Source: Diadema antillarum
Taxonomy: Eukaryota
Assembly (NCBI RefSeq): GCF_040938485.1
Contig: NW_027273089.1
Location: forward strand, 1 to 64,000
Direction of reading: 5' to 3'
Length of the DNA: 64,000 nt
Shown here one piece after another: positions 24,062-53,900 of this stretch (its first letter is position 1; the number at the start of each line of letters is the position of its first letter). The position numbers and the translations under genes were made by a program. Below the pieces are notes generated by a model that saw only the letters and a list, made by a program, of their open reading frames with translations, was not told where the DNA came from and searched no databases.

Positions 24062-25807
24062 TTAAAGGGTAAGAGGGGTTATACAGTAAATGATAGTAGG
24101 ACTAAAGAAAGATAATTTCTGCATGAGAATAAAAGAAGCCATCACCTATGAAACTCATAACTATTAATAATCAAAGCATGGATGGTTTTGGTTAGTTTCA
24201 GAGGAAAAACTCATCAGTGAAACTCTGCCTTGCAAACAGTAATTTCTTGAAAAGTTTGTAAGATGTACAGATGCAGAAATAGTAGTGTGTTATCTCTAAG
24301 AACACAGATAACCTCATCTTTCCTTTAAAAGGAATTTTCTCCTCTGTCTTGCTAAACCTCTCTGTGTATATCATTGACTACTCAAAACCCGACACAACAA
24401 AATTTCTATATGAAAGAGTACTTTACCTATGAAACAAACAAATAAACGCAGTCTTTGCAGAAATGTATGCAGAACAAGAGTGGATATCTAAAATGAATCA
24501 TGGCTCTTCTAAAGGATAAACCCAAGTCAAAATGACAGCAAAAGGACCACTAAACAAGCAAACACCTAATATAAACTGAGATCAACCAGACTCAGCAAGG
24601 AGTTTGACCGATTTACACACGATGTCTTGTTTGGCAGACTGAATGTCCGCAAACCAATTTCAGGTTAATGGTATATCAAAGAATAATGGAACAGTTATGA
24701 GACAACAGATGGGCCTTAACTCAGACGGAGAGAGAATTACCTTGCTCCACTTGAATTTTAGACATACACACATACTGACAAATTACACCATGAACTGCAC
24801 TAGAAGAAATAAAAGCTTTTTATGTATATGGGTTAACAAGAGAAAAATCCAATGCACAGCTGAGTTTTAGGACTAAAAATCTGTGTATGAAATGAAAAAG
24901 ATACATCTCTCATGAGGTGAGGTGGCAATATTCCACACCCCCACTTTACAAATCCATTCCCCTCCCCTGCCCTCCCCTCCCCTGCCCTCCCCCCCCCCTC
25001 CGACTCACACACACAAAAGAAAAACAAGAAATAAGAATATAATAGAGAATATGAAAAATTACATACATATATAAATTAATTACTGAATATACAAATACAT
25101 TAATGAATTAATAAAGAAACAAATGGATGGATAATGAGAAATGACTATTTCAATTTAATTGTTAATTAAACTACTTAACATGTAAATCACACATCACACA
25201 TGTCTTCAAAATGATTCCTGAATTGTAAAGATCTTTCTCGTCAACACACAATAGAAACTGTGTTGTTTTCTATCAACATTGCATCCTTCAATACCATCTT
25301 TGTATGGCACGCACATCGCATCACATCACATCAAGAAATCAAATTGAAGTAGTACCATTCATTGCTAGGTAATGCATATGGTATAAAATAAGTTTGGTCA
25401 TATATCATTTGTATGTACATATTGACATAATTTACATCCATTTCCTTTTACTTTCAATCAATTTGTAGAGCACAAATTGCGTGGCTTATATCGCTGGCCA
25501 ACTTTTAAGTTTGTAAGTGTCATGTTAACTAAAAAGGCTCTACTACGGAACAGTGATTTCCAAAATCCTCATGCAAATGTGTTCAGCCATTGGTAGCAAA
25601 ATAATTTTCAATGGGTTTTCTATCTTTCACTGATTATTTAAAAGCAAAGTTTTTAGTGTTTTTTTTTCCTCCGCCCCTTCACAACAATATGTATTGCACT
25701 CGTTAATCTGATCATTCCATGTTTGTGGTCATCTACACCACTTTTGCAATACTATTGTCATCGACTTGCCAGTTTTCATTTACACTTTCGAGATAATATA
25801 TAACCTG

Positions 25808-27579: not shown

Positions 27580-30500
27580 TCAGAGGTCATATATCCTGGC
27601 TATGATCATCTTGAGGCTCCTGTTCGGGGTCAGGTTGGTGTGACTGAGGGGAGCGTTGGTCATGGGGCTGGTGTTGCGGCTACCTCGCAGCCAGCTCTCG
27701 ATGGCCGAGCGTTCATATGTGTACCCATCTGTGTCAGTGGGACAGAGCAATGAAATAAAAACAAACAAGCCATTACATGTAAAGTGTGTGATATGAAAGC
27801 TTAAAGAGATCTAATGCGTTCAAAATACTGACAGTGTTCAAGAAGTTGCAGTTTAGACATGGCCCTTGATTACATTTAAAGGACAAGTTCACCTTCATAG
27901 ACATGTGGATTTCGTGAATGCAGCATTATTAGTTGAACACATCAGTGAAAGTTTGAGGAAAATCAGACAATCCATTCAAAAGTTATGAATTTTTGAAGTT
28001 TCTGCTCAGTCACGGCTGAATGAGTAGACTACTATAGCTTGTGATGTCACATGTGTACAACGACATAAAGAAAGAATAAAGAAAATTCAACATATTTTCA
28101 CTTTTCTCGCATAACAAAAGAACACTCGACTTCTCTCTTTCAGAAAGCAGGGGTAACAATCCCCGAAACATACATCAGTAACAAGTCGAAGAAATGTGCA
28201 CTTTATTCATTTTTTTTTTAAATTCTCTTTTTATTTTCGTTATATCGTTGTACGCATGTGACATCATACACTGTGATAGTCTTTTCATCCAGCAGTGACT
28301 GCACAGATACTTAAAAATTTCATAACTTTTGAACGGATTGTCCGATTTTCCCCCAACTTTTACTGATGTGTTTTACTATAAAATATTGTTGCCTTCGCTC
28401 AATCCACATGCATATCAAGGTGGACTTGTCCTTAAACTTGTTTCTTCAACAAACACACTAATAAAATAATCTTTTGACACTTAAGGACCTAATATTGTCA
28501 GTTGTCTTCACAATTCAAGCAATCAAGGTGGAGGCATTGTAATATAATACTATTTTTACACTTCAGGTCCTAATTTTGTCAGTTGTCATCACAAGTCAGG
28601 CTGCTCAAGGTGGAGGCATTCTGAGAGAAAAGACCTCACAGTGTATACAATATTTGAGTCCTGAAAACTTTTTAATGACATCAAGATTCAAACTGCTAAT
28701 ATGGAAGCACTTGAAGGATTTCATAGCAAAAGTCCATCATCAGATAGAGCTAAATGAAACTTTTCTAAACATATCTCATTTGTTACATTACAAGGAATAT
28801 TTTTGAAGTTATGATTAAAAATATCCCATATTTCCTCTTAATGTCATTTGTTTTTAGAAGCTTTAAAGGGATGGTACAGTATAGGTGAAGATGAGAATTG
28901 GGCTTTTAACTTTTTGCGAGATACCAAGAAAACACTTATGAAATAGTACAGAGCATACCATTCTAACAGAATTTCAAAGTTTATTTGATGAAAATCGGCT
29001 TTGGAATGATTGAAATATCCAAAAACAAAGTAAAACAAAGCGGTCGTTAAAAAAGTGTGGTTCCCACACTTTATTAGAATCATTCTGTTTTGGATATCTC
29101 AGCCATTTCAAAACCAATTTTCATCAAATAAACACTGAATTCCTCATGGAATTACATGCTCTTTCATATTTCATGAAAGGTTTCTCATTATCTCACCAAA
29201 AAATGTTAGAAGCCTGATATTAGGTCTCAACCAAAACTATACGATCTCAACTTTAGCAACAATGGAGTTAACTCGTTTTGCCATCAAACTCTCTATTTCA
29301 AGAAAGACGCAATGTGACTCACCAGCTGCTATGACCGGGTCTTTCATTATCTCTCGACTGATGGGACAAAGGTACTCATCAGGTACTTGATCATCTGTAT
29401 AATACAATGAATCAGAAAATGTGGCTCATAAAGTGCAGTCTTGACAGCTAGAAATAAAATCATTTCATGTCAAAAGAAACTGGAATCCTAGATCGTGCAG
29501 AGTACTGTTGATTTTGGATCTTGCTTTTTCAATCTCGTGTCTAGATACTATGCTGTCAACGATTCCATTGGGATAACCTTCAACAATATTTCTACATTCA
29601 AAATTTACTTGCATGAAAGAGAAATGAGTGATGTGGTGATGTTGAAAGAAAATAGGTTTTTGCAATATGCCTACACATTTCTTAAGATTCCCCCACATCA
29701 TACAGGGACTTTAAATGAGCATGTAAACCTATTTAGGAAGCAAATAATTCATATGCTTGAGCTAACTAATAATTCTGACACTGCAAGTTAATATGTTACA
29801 AACACTGGTATCACAAAACATAAGACTGACAACCTAACCACTTCCAGAAACTCTGATAAATTCTCTTCCTTCTTTTTAGTTGATGGCAAATCATATTAAA
29901 AACATACTGTTCTTCATTTCTGTGATTGTTTCACGGTAAAGTTCATTTGATTTGGGAATTTATTTCCTGTTTGTATTTGTTCATTTTCTTTTTTTGTTTT
30001 TTGGCAGTACTTTGAGTTTCATGAATAAGGATAGTAACTTTGGAGGATAAAGCGATAGTGTATTTCACCTGGTACAGGTCCTTGGGAACCAGAAAAGAAA
30101 CCCTTCTCTCTGACTGCTTGAACCCCTCGTAGGATCTTCTGACGATGACCAAGAGCCTCTGAGAGAGAGAATAGAGAGAAACCAATTGGTCGGTGTTTCA
30201 GTGCATTTTTTTCTTTTTGAATATCAACTGCTATGATGTCATGTGCCCATAATAACAACACGAATGCATATCTGAGGCGCGTAAAGTGTGCAGAAAAAAA
30301 TAACGTGAACGCATGGATACTTACACGCACCTGGCAGGCATTCGCGTTGTTCTTCTAGGCACATGAAGATTAGCTTGCCTGGAGCATGAAGTGCCTTTAT
30401 ACAGGGCTCCACACTAACTTTTTTTTTTTTGGTGGCCTGATGGGGCCACCAAAATCATCAATTTCAAATTTTGGGGGCCCGAGAGAAAAATTTGGTGGCC

Positions 30501-32950: not shown

Positions 32951-35900
32951 CATATACATAATACTTATATGTATATTTTCCAACCACATAGAATCCTTTT
33001 TCAATATTCTTCCACTTTGCCACAAGAAAGATGGAAAAACAACCAATTTGGAGGTGAACCCTTTTTTTCCCCTCCAGAACTGTAGCTACTTAAAGCATGA
33101 AAATCAATAAAATGCAGATTTTTTTTCTCTCTTACCACAGGTATGTTCTCAAGAAAAAGTACATTTCGAATGTAAGTTTAATAAAAAGAAAACTACAGTA
33201 GAACTGGAAAGAGCCTGACTCACTCTCGCTACTGGGGAGTAAAGGTTGCTGAAAGCCCAACCTCCAAACATAGACCTTGTGATGTGAGCCAGATGCCAGG
33301 TATAGGTTGTCTGGTGAGAAAGACACTGAGGTCACATACCTAAGAGAAGATGAAATGTAAGAAAAAGTTACAAGAGAAGGTCCGCATAATATATGCCATA
33401 TACAACCGTGTATATCACATGGTTTTAATTTTTGTGAATATGCGAGTCAGGTCCTAGTGCCGAATTCAAGAACATGCATAAATATTCACTCTGATCCCAA
33501 CATGAATGCTACATGCATGCAATACATATACTTCAGGGATGATATTGAGGTTTGTTGAAAAAATCGGAAATCAAAATTTTCAGGTGATTTTCATACATGA
33601 AAAAAGCAAAATGTGTACAGACTTGAGGGGGGAAAAAATCTGAAATCAGACTTAAATCTACAGAATATAATGCCTGATACTTGTAAGCAGTACACAGTAA
33701 AAGAACAAGATGTATGATAATACTGTACTCCACAATCGCGAATTCAACCATTCACAATAGTGTTGCGAAATCCTGATTTGTGAAATATTCGACTAGCTAA
33801 ATATATTGCATATACATTATGTCATCACATCTCTTTAATCCTTACATCACTTTTGATTTCAACTATGGAGGGCCAGAAGGAATGAGTGTAGGCCTTTCAC
33901 ATTACATATTCTTGATCCTGGAGATAAATTTTGATTTCTGACACATCTGACAGGCCAGTAGGACTTTATTCTGCGTGAATTTGACAAAATTTTTGAGTGT
34001 TCGATTGTAGGTTCACAAAACTCCAATGTACCCCTTCTTGAATTAGCTGGCTAGTTCAACAACGATAAAATCACAGGAGTTTATTGACAATAATGCAACA
34101 GATATGGCTATTTAGGTGTGGTACATTAAAAAGATCATGCTTAAAAATTGATTAGAAAGCATCTATTTTAGGATTCTGGTGTGTTGATCATTTCCTAGTC
34201 CAGATCTAACATACCCACTTGTTGACTTACATCATTTTTTTTTTCAAGATTACACTAGTAACATCACTAGCATGTTCTGGGCCCCGTTGCTAGAAACTTT
34301 GCGTTTAAACGCAACTCCAAAAATCAAACGCAAGTCCTCCAAATCCCACGCAACTTTGCGTTTAAACGCAAGTCTGTTGCTGAAAGGACTTGCGTTTAAA
34401 CGCAAAGTTGCGTTTAAACGCAAGTCCCTTGCGATCAAACGCAACTTTGCGTTTGATGTAGATCAAATGCAAGCAATCAGTCACAACACAATCAAAATGG
34501 CTGCCTATGTGGTAGAACTTGAGGAGGAGGAGGAGGAGGCACTCCATCAAGCTCCTCGGCCTCATCGTACTTTCAAACAAAGGTTCTCTGCCTTGGACTC
34601 CCTCACTGACGAGGAACTCAGAAAGAAATATCGTTTCAGTAGGGATGGTATCATGCACATTGTCAACATGCTGGACAACCATCTACAGCGCGCTACAGCA
34701 AGGAGCCATGCCATCCCTACTGAACTTCAAGTTCTAATTGCCCTGAATTTCATGGCTACCGGCTCATTATTTGACTCTGTTGCGAGTATTCACGGTGTAC
34801 ACCGCAGCACAGTCTCCCGGTGCGTGCATGCTGTTGCCGAGGCCTTGTGCCAGCAGAAGAACAACGTTAGTACATTTATTTGCCTTTGTAAAATTTATTT
34901 TGTATTCTAGAACTAGATACCGACTTTCAATCAAGTCGCTATTGATATCACCACATTCATTTTAGCAATGTTCTGAAGTAAAAACTTTATTATGAAGGCC
35001 ACCGTGGCAGTCGCCACCATGAACAACTATGGCTGGGACTAAGAGTACCTGTACGAATGTTTACCGTAGTTACTATAATAGTCATTACGCTGCAGCTGAC
35101 ACTCAGCTTGCTTGCCTTGCCTTGCCTTGACTACATTTTTCCCACGTTGTTTGAAGCGAACATTCAATTGTAACTCAGCAGTCCTAGCCTTGTCTAATGT
35201 CCAGTAGTGAACTAGTACACTTGCAGAATTTCCAGACAGTCAGTTTAGCTCAGTTCAGGAAGATGTAGAACACTTTAACTCAGTTTGATTATGATAATTT
35301 GTCAGCCTTCAAATCGAGCCTTTCTGAACTTCTGCTACAGTTCAGTGGTGTACGCATCGAACAGTATCCGATCTCCTGTGATCATCGAATCGTCGTCTAC
35401 GTTTACGTGGCCTGAGAGGGCAGCAATTAATCCAGCAACTTTTTATTATTATCATTATTATTGTATTTAGAATTTTTAAAAAAAAGTTTTTTCCCTGCAA
35501 ACACTGTTTAGGGCAAAATGTTTGAATGTCATTATTAGCATCATATTCACACACTCATACACATCAGAATACAAGTGTAAACTTAAAGCACGCAGCTATA
35601 CTTTTTTTATGTACAGTTAAAGCACACTTTTTAAAGTGCAATATGACATCTTTTAAATGAAATATTTCAAAATCCTTAATAACTTTTTTAAATGAAAAAT
35701 CTGCCTCCAATAACTTGCTAGAGACATCAATGTCTCTTAATAACTTTCATAATATGACCACAATTATTTACCTTATTACCCATTCCACAATGTATGTGAA
35801 ATACCTCTAGACAATTGAAAACAATACCCTGTAATCTGTATTAATTATGAAGAGTTTGTTTGCAAAAACCGATAAGTCCATATTAGCCAAATTGAGATAT

Positions 35901-38900
35901 TTACGATTAAAGGTCAAGAAAAATAAAGAGAATAATAAGGAAATGTTTGCTTCTTTTGACCATAAGTTCAAAAATGTACCTGTATGTGTAGTGACCAATA
36001 TATCATTTAAAAAGGTATTATTTTGTACTTTATGACAGAGACAGTACTTCAAAATCTTCAAAAATGGACCTATTGGTTTTTGCGAACAAATTCGTCATAT
36101 GTTCTACATGTATATATGTATGTATGTATATACACACATATATACCTATAGAACACATAAGTCTACACACCAAACTGTAGCACCCGCCCCCATAAAGAAT
36201 AAATTAACAAAGCACCACACAAGTACTTAACAGCACAACAAAACAAAAAACATTTCCACTTTCATACATTGATGTACAAGTCAATAACATGTGTCAAATG
36301 TGTACGCACTCCATTGAAAGCGTTACTACTTATAAGATGTGCAAAGTTAAAGCAGTGAATCATGATACACACACATATACTGAATGCACCACATACATCC
36401 CACACAAAGAAATGAAAAAATTCATTGCATGTACATACATAGATAGAGATATAGATATAGATATAGATCTGTAAATATGTAACCACACAATTACACATAG
36501 TATACTGTACAAGAGAAAATGAAATAATATAAAGTTATTAGGTGTCAATGATGTGAAGAAATAATTTATTCAACATCATAATAACTTTTCATTTAACTTA
36601 TCATTGTAATGAAAAAGTACATGAATATACACGGTATAGAAAAAAACTGACAACAATAATACAAACGTCACGTACGTAGATGTAAGTACCACATACTGTG
36701 AGTATTGTATTCTAGACCTTTTGCGATGTTATTTGAAATGTTCAATTACATGTAGAACAATTTGTCTTGTCAACAAATTTCAGGTCATCAAATTTCCCCA
36801 TGCCCCAGAAGTTGTGGCCTCAACTGTGGAGCAGTTTCACAACATTGCGGGATTCCCAAGAGTCGTAAGCGTGATAGACTGCACGCATGTCAGTCTCCAC
36901 GGATGCCACCTCGGGGAAGACGAATATGTTTACATAAATCGTAAGGGAAGGTGTACAGTAAATGTTCAGCTGGCATGCGATGCCAAGTTCAGGATAACCA
37001 ACTGTGTTGCGCGATGGCCAGGCAGCACACATGATAGCCGCATATTTCAGGTAAGTTCTCTCGATAATGATAATACAATTTGAAAATGCACCATTTTTTC
37101 TGCTTTAAATCTCACAAACTTGACCATATGTATCGAAAGAGTTGATACAGTTTCATAACAAATTACGATTTAAATGAGTTTGACACTAGCTGTTATGAAA
37201 TAGCACCTTTCAGAATTTACATTGCTTTAAAAGTCTTGATGATGTTAAAACAAGAAATAGTACTGCAGCACAAGGCCATCAATGTATATTTCCTTAGGCA
37301 ATGAGTCAATGATACTATGAAACAAAATAAACTAAATGCAATAAAATTTGAAAAGTCAATGTGAGAAAATTGATATTACCTTCACTCAAAAAAAAAGAGA
37401 AAAACATGTCATAATTGCAGTCACACTTATATATAAAAATATAAATAATTGTTGGTTGACTGAATACAAAAAACCAAAAACATTACTTTATTTTCTTACA
37501 AGTTTGTATTGTATCACAAACTGTTATCACAGAACAGCAGACTCTTCCAGAAGTTTGAAAGTGGCCAACTTCAAGGCATACTGCTCGGAGATTCTGGGTA
37601 TCCCTTGCTTCCATACCTCATGACCCCAATACTGAATCCTCAAACAAGAGCAGAACATGCATACAACCAGTAAGTAACCAAGTATGTCAAATTCTACAGT
37701 AAATATTATGGTACATGTTTTCAAAACATAACATGACATAGTGTTCATTGAATAACATCTTCCTTCTTTTTAGAAAATGGTGAACACTGAAGTTATTTCA
37801 CAGATATCTTATCTTTGTGTATTGCATTGCTATCATTTACTTTGTATTTCTTTTACATCAACAAATGTATTCAATCTTTTCTTCTCTGAATGATTACACA
37901 CTGTGGTACTACACCCTCAGACCAAACTAAAAATGAAGAAAGCTTACCGGTATATACAACCTTCACTGTACTGTAACTCTATCTAGGAAAAAAAAAAAAG
38001 ATCTGTTCATTACAACACTAATATATATTGGTAGATATCTGTTTACAGTTGAATACAGTTACTCCAAAATTATTTATTTTGGCAAAATTCTGATAGACAG
38101 CTTCTTTCAAGCAATTCTGTGGCATTTGACACAATTACCTCTTATAACAGTGTTGTATAATACATCATTGTACAGGAGGTTATGCATATAAATGTAATGT
38201 ACCCTTTCACTGTGAAAATGCCTCACTTTATATTTTGATGTCTGGGCAAAAAATGTCTTCATTTTCAATTTGTAGGAGGGTAAGACAACATTAATGTTGA
38301 CATTTTTTCTTTGTTTTTTTCTAATTTCATCTACAAATCTACAGTGCACATGTTCACACCAGGTCCATCATTGAGCAACTCAACGGCCAGATCAAAAACA
38401 AATTTCGTTGTTTAATCGGCCATGGACTGCAAATTTCCCCCCAGCGAGCCTGCAATATCATCACAGCAGCGTGTGTCCTGTTTAACATCTCAAAGGATCT
38501 GGGTGGACACGACATGGATGACGACTTCGCACCTGCCAACGAAGATGCTGCAATGGAGTTCGTCAACAGAAATGTGGACCCAGCAGCCGCAGCTGTGCGA
38601 GCAGAGATAGTCCGTGCATTTGATGCCTAGGTTTCTTTGGACCATAAGTACAGCATACATGTGCTTTTATGCCTCAGCCATGAAGTGTTACTTTTGGGGT
38701 TCGGGGGTTATCCGTATGTCAAGTTGTTCCAAAATCTATCTTGTGAAGAGTGTCAATTAGAAAAAAAAATAGTGAACAGAGCTGTGCCTATCAACTCCTG
38801 GTTGCACATGCTCAATAAGATTAAAGGTTAAAGTCAAATTCTTAAAAACATCACAATTACTCCTATATACATGCATTGCCTGAAAGTACTTCATTGCAAC

Positions 38901-50900: not shown

Positions 50901-53900
50901 ATTTTCTTCTAATAACATCTACCACAAACACAAGTAGCGTCAGACGATTTAGACCTTATGTGGAACGGAAATACAGCATATTTCACAGCGTTCAGCGGAT
51001 ATTCACGCATTCGAAACTACAGCCACTGAGCTGAGCCAGTTCTAATACTACACATCAGCATCTTCACCCGCACGACCGTACGATCGTGAGCACGTAACTA
51101 CAGGAAACTATAGCCCGTGAAATGCTTATAGAACGAAAAGAACTTATCTATGCTTTCAATGTACGTTAATTAATTGAAGCTGTTAATAATTCACGCAAAA
51201 TACCATCATTTTAACGGCCAAAACGTATTAGTCGACTTCATTTTTACCAATACTCACCGGTGGAGCAGCAACAGGCAGGGAGCAGACGACTGAGAGCTAC
51301 GCTGACTAGACGCGCGTTCCGTTTTTTCGGGGAAATACCGGAAATTAGGCTCGTCCATGACAATTCGTTCCGATTGCGCGTTTATCAATCACACGCAAGT
51401 TGCAATCAAACGCAAGTCTTTTCTAGCAACGGCGCGCAAGTATCCTACGCAAGTTGCGTGAGATACTTGCGTAGGATGTGAGTTGCGTTTAAACGCAATT
51501 TGAGTTTCTTGCAACGGGGCCCTGATCATAAAGTTTCTGATGATTTTGTTTCATTTTGTTTTTTGTTTTTATTTTTACTTTTGCTTAGTTTTTTTTTTTT
51601 TTTTTTTTTTTTTGCTTGTACTTTTCTAAAGATTATACAGATGCCTTGTTTCTTGGGATCACTGTGGGTTTCATACACATAAAGCTGTCTTCACCGCAAT
51701 GTCTCTATTTCTCATATACCTTGAATGACCTTCCAAGGTGTACATCATTTCTGCAGAAATCTGTAAAGCAAACAAAAACATGATTGAAGGGGGAAGGGGT
51801 GAAATAAACATTATTCCTCTGAACTCACAGAACTCTTCAATGATTCTTGTGGAGGCATAAGTACAAGATGAGGATCTCAAGCAAACTACAGCAATCATTG
51901 ATCAAAACCCTGATACATCAAATTTGAAGGGTGAAGAAAATAAATACTGTAGTCGTTCTATGGTCACACACCCATACAATAAACACATACCAATGTATAA
52001 AGTAACATACAAACAACATTACAGGCACATAAACATACAAATGCATACACACATACATGTGCATTCAAACATATATGCATACATATATATTTACATATTT
52101 GTGGGTTTGTATAGGATATTCTCTTAATAAAAAAGGCAGCAAGAAATGCTCTCCTGGATTTCAAAGTTTCAGCTGAGTTTTAGGACATCACAAGTCTCCG
52201 TCATGAGCCTAAAATCGATGAACAACCAAGTCCAAAATAAGATCTTTAATTACTTTTGTTCTTCTTTTAAAAAAAATAAAACTAGTCTGAAGCTAGTCTA
52301 CTCTGACTTTGCTGAGATGCTTACTGGGTTCCAGAGTATGACTAATTTGTCCACAGCTCTGTAGAGAAAAAGGAGAAAAAAGATTTAGTGTGCAGATATT
52401 ATACAACTCCTGGGAAGTCTCTCATGCAACTCATTAGCAAACATCGAATCACATTAAAAAAATATCAATAAATTTCAGGTAAATATTGCCTGACAACTTG
52501 CCTGTTTTCAATTTTATCAAACAGATGTAGACTTATCCAGGCCCTGCTGTTTTAAATGGTCAAGGTATCTTGTGTGATTGCAAGGCATTATTATCTATGA
52601 GCAATCTCTTTCTTTCGTTGGTTTTATTATAAGACAGTCAATGACTTAACATGTATTCACTTGGCTTAAAACTGGGTAAGAAGGTATCAATTGCATCTTC
52701 TTGCTTAAAGTCTCTCTCTATCTTTCTATACATATGTAACTATATATCTATTTATCTATCCATCTATCAATCTATCTATCTCTTAGTTCCAACCTGCACT
52801 TTGTGTTTATCCCCGCATTCATATTAGGCCCCGTGTTGAGGGGACAGTCACCAACGATGTTATCTTTTTTATGACTGACCGTCCACATGGCTATCTGGAC
52901 TGTCCCCGAGCTGTGGGGGGCAGTTAGGGCTTGGAGCGAGCTCTGCCACTTGAAACCAGGCATTGGGCACATGCATATTTGATGAACACAGCTGGATGCT
53001 ATCAATATACTGTGCCCTAAGGTAACTCTACCTTCCAAATCTTGGCCCCAGACTCGACTTGCTTCGAGGGGACAAGGGGACAATTCCCAGTGAGCGTTCA
53101 CATTATGGTTTTGGAGGAGAAAGTCCCACAGTGTGGGACTTATCCCCGCATCACGGGGATTAATGTGAATGCAGGGTACGTGACTGTCGCTAGATATCAA
53201 TGGAAATGAGCTTCGTCTTCAATACTTTAACCACACCGATCTCATTTTTTCAACACGGCAGATCTTACCCCGATGCTAGCAAGTGCCCATCTGCAGAGAA
53301 GGCTACTGATTGGACGGTTGCCGAATGACCCGTCAGGTCACACCGCAGCTTGGTGGAACACACTGAAAAAAAAAATAATAATAATCACAGACATCATCAA
53401 AAATTGGGAGTGCAGATCCTGAATGAAAGGGAGACAGCACAATATCCCTAAATATATTGTTATTATCAGTACAGTATGTATCACTTTAATAATTCACACA
53501 TCAATCTCGTCAGAATTGGTACCTTGAATGATTACATAGCAATGACATAAACACTTTTGAAGGCACACTTGCATCCATAGAGGAATTTCACATATCTTAA
53601 TACTGCTAAGTTAGAATAGCACCTTGATCAAAAGAAATATCCTATGAATTCAATGAATGATTAGCACAAAATGTACAATTATCTGTATTGAAAGTCTTTA
53701 ATTTATTCATTTTATTGTGAATCGGAATGTATATTAATACATATATATATATATTTTTTTTTTAAAACAACAGTCCTAACTTTGTGAATTATTTTGTGGC
53801 ATCTTAAAATAAAATTCAACACATAATATACCAACTAATGCTGGGATATCAAAGCTGAAAACATCCCAGTGCATTTTCAAAGACCTTGCTGCTAATGTCT

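Follow-up and report, generated by a model that had tools for sequence, protein, structure and literature searches.

Transposons of the PIF/Harbinger superfamily are recognized by terminal inverted repeats with a 3-bp target-site duplication and by two genes, one for a DDE_Tnp_4-type transposase with catalytic D, D and E residues and one for a Myb/SANT-like DNA-binding protein. In a survey that covers 380 families, Han et al. (2015; PMC4482050) give a mean autonomous consensus of 4,124 bp for PIF/Harbinger proper and of 4,462 bp for NuwaI. The defining marks of this group are a CWG target duplication and terminal repeats, 12-61 bp long and usually beginning GGG, and it includes the zebrafish HARBINGER3_DR (4,204 bp). 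Among the 18 of 23 NuwaI families considered from its Table S5 the longest measures 8,497 bp, no echinoderm stands among the hosts of the group, and the two families from Strongylocentrotus purpuratus are TWA-type elements of 2-3 kb (PMC4482050). Complete PIF/Harbinger elements of Medicago range from 2,180 to 25,288 bp (PMC2213677). Here we describe a 17,242-bp element at positions 34280-51521 of a 64,000-nucleotide stretch of the sea urchin Diadema antillarum (contig NW_027273089.1, positions 1 to 64,000; hereafter the window), which is very probably an autonomous cut-and-paste PIF/Harbinger copy of the NuwaI kind, recently inserted into an intron of a WDSUB1-like gene.

Four described systems frame the comparison. 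The zebrafish HARBINGER3_DR resembles the Diadema element in its CWG duplication, in repeats that begin GG and in its animal host, and, in common with NuwaI and with Diadema, it encodes a transposase of the DDE_Tnp_4 type (about 340-350 aa) together with a protein of the Myb_DNA-bind_5 type (about 220-280 aa); the two are likened by description, and they differ in length (4,204 bp as against 17,242 bp). NuwaI-4_CGig / Harbinger-8_CGi of the Pacific oyster likewise targets CWG, carries both genes, belongs to a marine invertebrate and is of above-average size, but its 8,497 bp are about half the Diadema length and its proteins are shorter (292 and 171 aa). MtPH-A6-4 of Medicago truncatula (Grzebelus et al., 2007; PMC2213677), which is complete with repeats and duplications, demonstrates that members of the superfamily can exceed 20 kb. 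Its subfamily belongs to a plant and varies from 431 to 25,288 bp with variable-number tandem repeats, whereas the large body of the Diadema element is common to all sampled copies. Finally, the domesticated vertebrate HARBI1/NAIF1 are homologous proteins and the source of the NCBI name given to the Diadema transposase, but they are single-copy orthologues without terminal repeats, whereas Diadema has many young copies with intact ends.

Set against these systems, the Diadema element combines a 3-bp CTG duplication with 19-bp repeats, as is characteristic of the superfamily, and the CWG target duplication of NuwaI is present both in the window (CTG on both sides) and in a relative from Lytechinus pictus described below. 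Its terminal repeat begins GGC, which the preceding G of the CTG triplet would turn into GGG, and the 19-bp length lies within the 12-61 bp of NuwaI. The element fits NuwaI as a CWG-target PIF/Harbinger, and it appears to represent a new and unusually large family of a known kind of transposon. A literature search on repeats of Diadema brought up a note on the D. setosum genome and nothing else.

The element, its ends and its two genes

The two ends are 19-bp terminal inverted repeats that match at 18 of 19 positions and stand directly inside the duplicated triplet: the left junction reads CATGTT CTG followed by GGCCCCGTTGCTAGAAACT, and the right junction reads AGTTTCTTGCAACGGGGCC followed by CTG ATCATA (Table 1). 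At up to three mismatches the 19-mer has two matches in total in the 64-kb window, where none is expected and none appeared in 100 shuffles. The variant base of the right repeat, an A, is also present in the left repeat of one copy from Diadema setosum (L006). Next to the repeats lies the 16-bp palindrome TTGCGTTTAAACGCAA. Five copies fall within 34299-34444 and one at 51483-51498; these 6 are all that the window contains, where 0.04 would be expected. The palindrome is an obvious candidate binding site for the Myb-like protein.

The host gene is read from the minus strand: an exon ends at 51720 and is followed by a gtatat donor, and the next exon runs from 33339 after a ttag acceptor. The intron between them is 18,380 bp long, and removing the 17,242 bp of the element together with 3 bp for one CTG leaves 1,135 bp. 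The NCBI model of the host, a 502-aa WD40 protein, spans the element, and SAM and U-box exons are seen in the translations of open reading frames (ORFs).

The plus strand of the element carries a four-exon GT-AG gene with introns of 1,918, 482 and 675 bp. Its stop-free product of 352 aa is 100% identical to XP_071482615.1 ("putative nuclease HARBI1"), which is coded at 34497-38630 of contig JBFRCO010002201.1 (GCA_040938485.1), the coordinates of the window being those of the contig. The Pfam profile DDE_Tnp_4 matches residues 154-305 with E = 7e-35 over its whole length (profile positions 1-158), and D155, D232 and E268 lie within the conserved motifs IDCTH, LLGDSGYP and IIEQ. Judged by these motifs, the gene encodes the DDE_Tnp_4-type transposase with catalytic D, D and E that marks the PIF/Harbinger superfamily. 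When exon 2 was compared with 1.84 billion protein representatives, it led to a 351-aa protein at 90% identity; nine models named "putative nuclease HARBI1" belong to the 90% cluster of this protein, four of them from D. setosum and five from D. antillarum.

Convergent with the transposase gene, the minus strand carries a five-exon gene with introns of 865, 914, 2,882 and 419 bp, the product of which is a 256-aa protein in an open frame. The join between exons 2 and 3 is supported because the two exons match complementary halves of Myb_DNA-bind_5, and the true start codon is likely separated from exon 2 by the 865-bp intron. As for the inner boundaries, two combinations alone yield the 257 aa annotated in D. 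setosum, and only the combination 46706 / 43823-43708 / 43288 also reproduces the NCBI models of 239 aa (window copy) and of 156 aa (the truncated model of a sister copy, L004). The 257-aa D. setosum model matches both Myb_DNA-bind_5 and Myb_DNA-bind_4; its first exon lies beyond the analysed locus, and it is compatible with a split start codon. The gene is thus predicted to provide the Myb/SANT-like DNA-binding protein expected as the second product of a PIF/Harbinger element. The 239-aa NCBI model of the window copy begins at an internal Met at 47839, so that 17 N-terminal residues are missing, among them those that open the Myb domain. No copy has a stop-free stretch of the Myb gene longer than 127 aa; a protein search with this longest piece gave no match within a length window of 0.55-1.75, which excludes products of 239-257 aa. 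In two sister copies (L002 and L003) no Myb gene is annotated.

An earlier note on this stretch, made from its letters, had claimed 19-bp terminal repeats with one mismatch, a CTG duplication on both sides, an 18,380-bp intron that shrinks to 1,135 bp and two convergent spliced genes making up the Harbinger protein pair with a CWG-type duplication. The repeats and triplets are where it placed them, the splice-site coordinates give exactly both intron lengths, and the protein pair is borne out exon by exon, with DDE_Tnp_4 and Myb_DNA-bind_5 genes between CTG flanks.

The two proteins suggest a mode of action. In Harbinger3_DR, according to a summary in PMC9179366, the transposase is a partner of the Myb-like protein, which imports it into the nucleus and attaches to the ends of the element, with excision as the outcome. 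By analogy, the Myb-like protein of Diadema would bind the repeated TTGCGTTTAAACGCAA palindromes beside the terminal repeats, carry the transposase into the nucleus and recruit it to the ends, where the D155/D232/E268 site would excise the whole 17.2 kb and reinsert it at a CWG triplet.

Copies in Diadema and relatives in other sea urchins

Sister copies were sought where the cluster's four other D. antillarum proteins are encoded, each locus taken with 10 kb on each side (L002-L005); in GCA_040938485.1 these loci lie on JBFRCO010000706.1 near 899639, JBFRCO010001175.1 near 744998, JBFRCO010000010.1 near 357184 and JBFRCO010000587.1 near 158361. In all four, similarity to the window begins at 34276-34279, directly at the terminal repeat. 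It stays collinear and unrearranged across the introns, the spacer and the Myb gene as far as the analysed DNA extends, reaching window positions 49069 (L002), 48467 (L003), 48227 (L005) and 44634 (L004), that is, over 13.9-14.8 kb in L002, L003 and L005 and over 10.1 kb in L004. The 9.8-kb left flanks, short dispersed repeats aside, are unrelated to each other and to the window, and the copies sit in different host contexts, among them introns of a dynein heavy-chain gene and of an ankyrin-DHHC gene. Because the same large body stands behind the same terminus in the sister copies, its size is not due to insertions private to the window copy, and their collinearity argues that the two ends are not those of unrelated transposable elements of the miniature inverted-repeat type (MITEs). 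The triplet before the left terminus is CTG in the window, L002 and L005, CAG in L004 and CTT in L003.

The copies are close to one another. Over the left 4.4 kb, substitutions between the window and its sisters amount to about 0.2-0.3% in exons and about 0.8-1.1% in introns, and the pairwise distances among the five copies are 0.22-0.94%, three of them lying within 0.22-0.29%. L004 has two private additions of about 1 kb and about 3 kb, which bring this copy to an estimated length of about 21 kb. The larger, a 2.98-kb insertion at L004:20906-23885, bears the inverted 12-mer TAGGTGATACGC at its ends, which suggests another small terminal-repeat element; the smaller, at L004:17188-18187, is a 1-kb rearrangement in which the 196 bp of window 41669-41864 are present as two inverted duplicates.

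The same element is found in D. setosum at three independent sites and in one segmental duplicate (L006-L009), at about 6% divergence. The left terminus is that of the window, and the triplets at the three independent sites are CAG, CTG and CAG. L007 and L008, which lie about 132 kb apart on OZ188200.1, have 9.8-kb left flanks that are 99.7% identical, and by this similarity they are a segmental duplication including the transposon, not two insertions. The left junctions of the 8 further Diadema loci are CTG in four (two of them one duplicated site), CAG in three and CTT in one, so that CTG or CAG stands at eight of nine loci with the window included; to judge from the flanks, the same left terminus occupies seven independent sites among these 8 loci. 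None of the sampled insertion sites is common to the two species, and because copies are far closer within species than between them, amplification postdates the species split. In agreement with this, the share of sampled words present in DNA runs was 0.65-0.76 for the source organism (three largest runs), 0.39 for a second organism and 0.10 for a third, the last value corresponding to about 7% divergence.

Divergence between the species is unevenly distributed along the element. Between the window and L006-L008, identity is 96.0% in exons, 92.4-93.1% in introns and 98-99% in the first 217 bp; for the older copy L009 the corresponding figures are 80.9%, 90.9% and 96.3%. Between the Diadema species, the ratio of nonsynonymous to synonymous divergence (dN/dS) is 0.13 for the transposase (dS 0.129) and 0.17-0.19 over 176 codons for the Myb gene, where dS, at about 0.42, is rough. 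Selection that is strongest on ends and coding sequence is the pattern of a lineage of transposing copies, and it is the expected one because only transposition-competent copies leave descendants. Between the window and L007, dS is 0.13 for the transposase as against about 0.42 for the Myb gene, while the adjoining non-coding DNA is only 8-11% diverged; the gap may be noise (few sites, a proline-rich region) or may reflect different histories of the two halves.

After Diadema, the next relatives of the transposase are models from Lytechinus. XP_054757505.1 of L. pictus is 51% identical to it at the protein level, and its gene spans 6 kb with a convergent Myb_DNA-bind_5 gene beyond. The two genes lie in a 15,279-bp element with a perfect 17-bp inverted repeat beginning GGG, GGGCCTATTTCATAAAG, at 9742-9758 and 25004-25020 of the analysed locus (L010) and with CTG outside both ends. 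Its subterminal repeats are of two sequences: the palindrome TTGCTATSATAGCAA, present five times, at the right end, and AGCGTCAA at the left. The L. pictus element thus resembles that of Diadema in its convergent, intron-rich transposase and Myb_DNA-bind_5 genes, its CTG flanks and its palindromic subterminal repeats, but differs in the terminal and subterminal sequences themselves, and DNA similarity between the two was detected in exons only. This layout indicates that the large intron-rich architecture is common to distant sea urchins. In the current annotation the genes of the L. pictus element are listed as host genes. A second Harbinger-type transposase gene of D. setosum (L011, on OZ188186.1), which encodes 376 aa, is 46% identical overall and spans 7.5 kb inside an ankyrin-repeat gene, indicates that long intron-rich Harbinger genes are not confined to one family; a search for its terminal repeats found no inverted 13-mer match.

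The size of the Diadema element follows from its composition. Coding sequence amounts to 1,830 nt (10.6% of the element), and with only about 11% coding, the remainder is taken up by introns as long as 2.9 kb, by a spacer of 4.3 kb and by small nested repeats, all now part of the copied unit. In a comparison with about 125 kb of non-element DNA, about 1.5 kb of the interior proved to match repeats that are present there too. One of these, a repeat of about 570 bp in the spacer (42071-42644), matches itself on both strands and is accordingly palindromic (foldback or MITE-like); it recurs at 27873-28440, elsewhere within the WDSUB1-like gene, and one D. setosum locus has it three times in its flank. 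Another stretch of about 310 bp in transposase intron 1 (35842-36153) is present in all D. antillarum copies, and part of it recurs in the flank of L006; because the D. setosum copies are without it, this nested repeat entered the D. antillarum master copy and has been copied along since. A 204-bp tandem array occupies 44638-45139. Upstream of the Myb gene, an ORF of 141 aa at 49125-49550 (plus strand) contains the motif TRGHSMKL. Pfam gave no match to it, and a protein atlas gave weak leads only, to reverse-transcriptase tails (score 0.83); the motif recalls the C-terminal tail of invertebrate long interspersed nuclear element (LINE) reverse transcriptases.

The element is about four times the NuwaI average and twice the maximum among the 18 of 23 NuwaI families considered. 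The earlier note had suggested a large-bodied family and had pointed to sister copies with different flanks as its test. Four such copies, with unrelated flanks and the same left terminus, are what we find, and together with the D. setosum and L. pictus elements they uphold the large-bodied family; Medicago elements of up to 25,288 bp show that size alone is not unprecedented in the superfamily.

Table 1. Features of the element, of its host intron and of the L. pictus relative (positions in the window unless a locus is named).
Feature	Position	Strand	Basis or remark
WDSUB1-like host intron holding the element	33340-51719	-	Donor and acceptor sites; NCBI gene model spans the element
Left target-site duplication, CTG	34277-34279		Same triplet beyond the right end
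Left terminal inverted repeat, 19 bp, GGCCCCGTTGCTAGAAACT	34280-34298	+	Homology of all 8 sister and relative copies begins here
Left subterminal array, five TTGCGTTTAAACGCAA palindromes	34299-34454		Candidate binding sites of the Myb-like protein
Transposase exon 1, start codon and helix-turn-helix region	34497-34865	+	Weak HTH_Tnp_4 match
Transposase exon 2, first catalytic Asp (D155)	36784-37050	+	GT-AG model, conserved motif
Transposase exon 3, second catalytic Asp (D232)	37533-37669	+	GT-AG model, conserved motif
Transposase exon 4, catalytic Glu (E268) and stop codon	38345-38630	+	GT-AG model, conserved motif
Interior stretches matching outside repeats	35846-36098, 42071-42644, 42705-42835, 46217-46434, 47501-47649		Repeat comparison
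Non-coding spacer between the convergent genes, 4,274 bp	38631-42904		Present in all D. antillarum copies
Myb-like last coding exon, stop codon	43288-42905	-	Conserved in all copies
Myb-like coding exon 4	43823-43708	-	Boundaries chosen from NCBI product lengths
Myb-like coding exon 3, second half of Myb/SANT domain	46853-46706	-	Myb_DNA-bind_5 positions 34-72; also Myb_DNA-bind_4
Myb-like coding exon 2, first half of Myb/SANT domain	47887-47768	-	Myb_DNA-bind_5 profile positions 1-29
Myb-like start codon, last 3 bases of the upstream exon, then GTAAGT donor	48755-48753	-	Kept in L002
Region upstream of the Myb start, about 2.7-2.8 kb	48756-51502		Includes the LINE-tail-like ORF
Right 19-bp terminal inverted repeat (GGCCCCGTTGCAAGAAACT if read on the reverse strand)	51503-51521	-	One mismatch against the left repeat
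Right target-site duplication, CTG	51522-51524		Copy of the left triplet
L. pictus Harbinger, 15,279 bp	L010:9742-25020 (CM073226.1, about 1823931-1839209)		Repeats and CTG on both sides

Competing explanations

Several points weigh against reading the 17.2 kb as a complete autonomous copy of a mobile family. The sister copies were compared from the left terminus only, their right ends lying beyond the 10-kb flanks, so the family-wide comparison covers the window up to 49069 and the last 2.45 kb (49070-51521), with the possible nested LINE fragment, lie beyond it. The models of the transposase and Myb genes rest on NCBI predictions and on consistency across species. A premature stop in Myb exon 3 of L002 (L002:22162-22284), where the transposase is intact, means that not every copy is autonomous, and the CTT at the left junction of L003 is not a CWG triplet. 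A protein search for an empty site in other species, made with the ORF of the host exon adjoining the insertion, found no match. That the family is still active today is probable, and it is the low divergence among copies that speaks for it.

The alternative that survives best concedes the recent amplification and denies present movement: the family would now be dead and the window copy complete but immobile, being silenced or carrying a defect in its Myb gene or right end. The window copy does carry 15 substitutions of its own within 4.4 kb, its transposase has an additional Glu codon, and its right repeat has one mismatch; both frames are nevertheless open, the catalytic residues are present, and the 0.22-0.29% that separates three sister copies points to very recent movement, which together make a dead family unlikely.

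Much less probable is that the element is a composite, in which a few-kb Harbinger lies beside unrelated DNA and the ends come from different small elements or MITEs. The halt of the sister comparison before the right 2.45 kb and the small foreign repeats inside the element leave some room for it. Against it, a common stretch of 10-14.8 kb follows the left terminus, in unchanged order, in every sister copy; the two 19-mers, which have the subterminal palindrome and the flanking CTG in common, find no further match in 64 kb; and the L. pictus relative has both its ends, 15.3 kb apart, around the same gene pair. We consider a composite very improbable.

Still less probable, to the point of being hardly tenable, is a co-domesticated host gene pair of the HARBI1/NAIF1 kind that has kept old transposon ends. 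Both genes are unbroken, purifying selection has acted on them between the species, and the NCBI product name is HARBI1, as such a pair would have it. However, D. antillarum has at least five copies and D. setosum at least three independent sites, none of the sampled ones orthologous; the copies are 0.2-0.9% apart with introns included; the terminal repeats and target duplication are intact; and the best-conserved part is the terminal 217 bp, which is sensible for transposition and not for a host gene. A single-copy orthologous host locus without transposon ends was looked for as the signature of domestication, and what was found instead is at least five near-identical copies with intact ends and, in the sample, no site common to the species, a multi-site pattern that refutes domestication.

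Finally, the view that the copies arose by misassembly or segmental duplication and not by transposition, for which the L007/L008 pair with its near-identical flanks is the one precedent, is of negligible probability, because at the other loci homology begins exactly at the terminal repeat between unrelated flanks and the same structure recurs in both species, whose assemblies are independent, and in DNA runs of other samples. The reading of 34280-51521 as a recently inserted autonomous NuwaI-type copy is therefore the one that we carry forward.

Significance for sea urchin genomes

For annotation, the consequence is that the "putative nuclease HARBI1" genes in the Diadema and Lytechinus annotations are transposon genes and not host genes, and that the transposon makes up 94% of the 18-kb WDSUB1-like intron. 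For the biology of the superfamily, the element indicates that a Harbinger can amplify despite about 90% of non-coding ballast in the form of long introns, spacer and nested repeats, its copies being 0.2-0.9% apart; what a Harbinger is remains unchanged by these findings.

We further propose, tentatively and as somewhat short of an even bet, that the CWG Harbingers of sea urchins form a long-lived lineage in which the pair of proteins routinely moves 15-17 kb and possibly more than 21 kb (L004), and that the family is still transposing in D. antillarum; it would then stand as the largest autonomous PIF/Harbinger family of animals with demonstrable mobility and as a natural means of moving large cargo by cut-and-paste. 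Harbinger3_DR works in human cells, and the Diadema proteins, if active, would be a candidate for moving large inserts.

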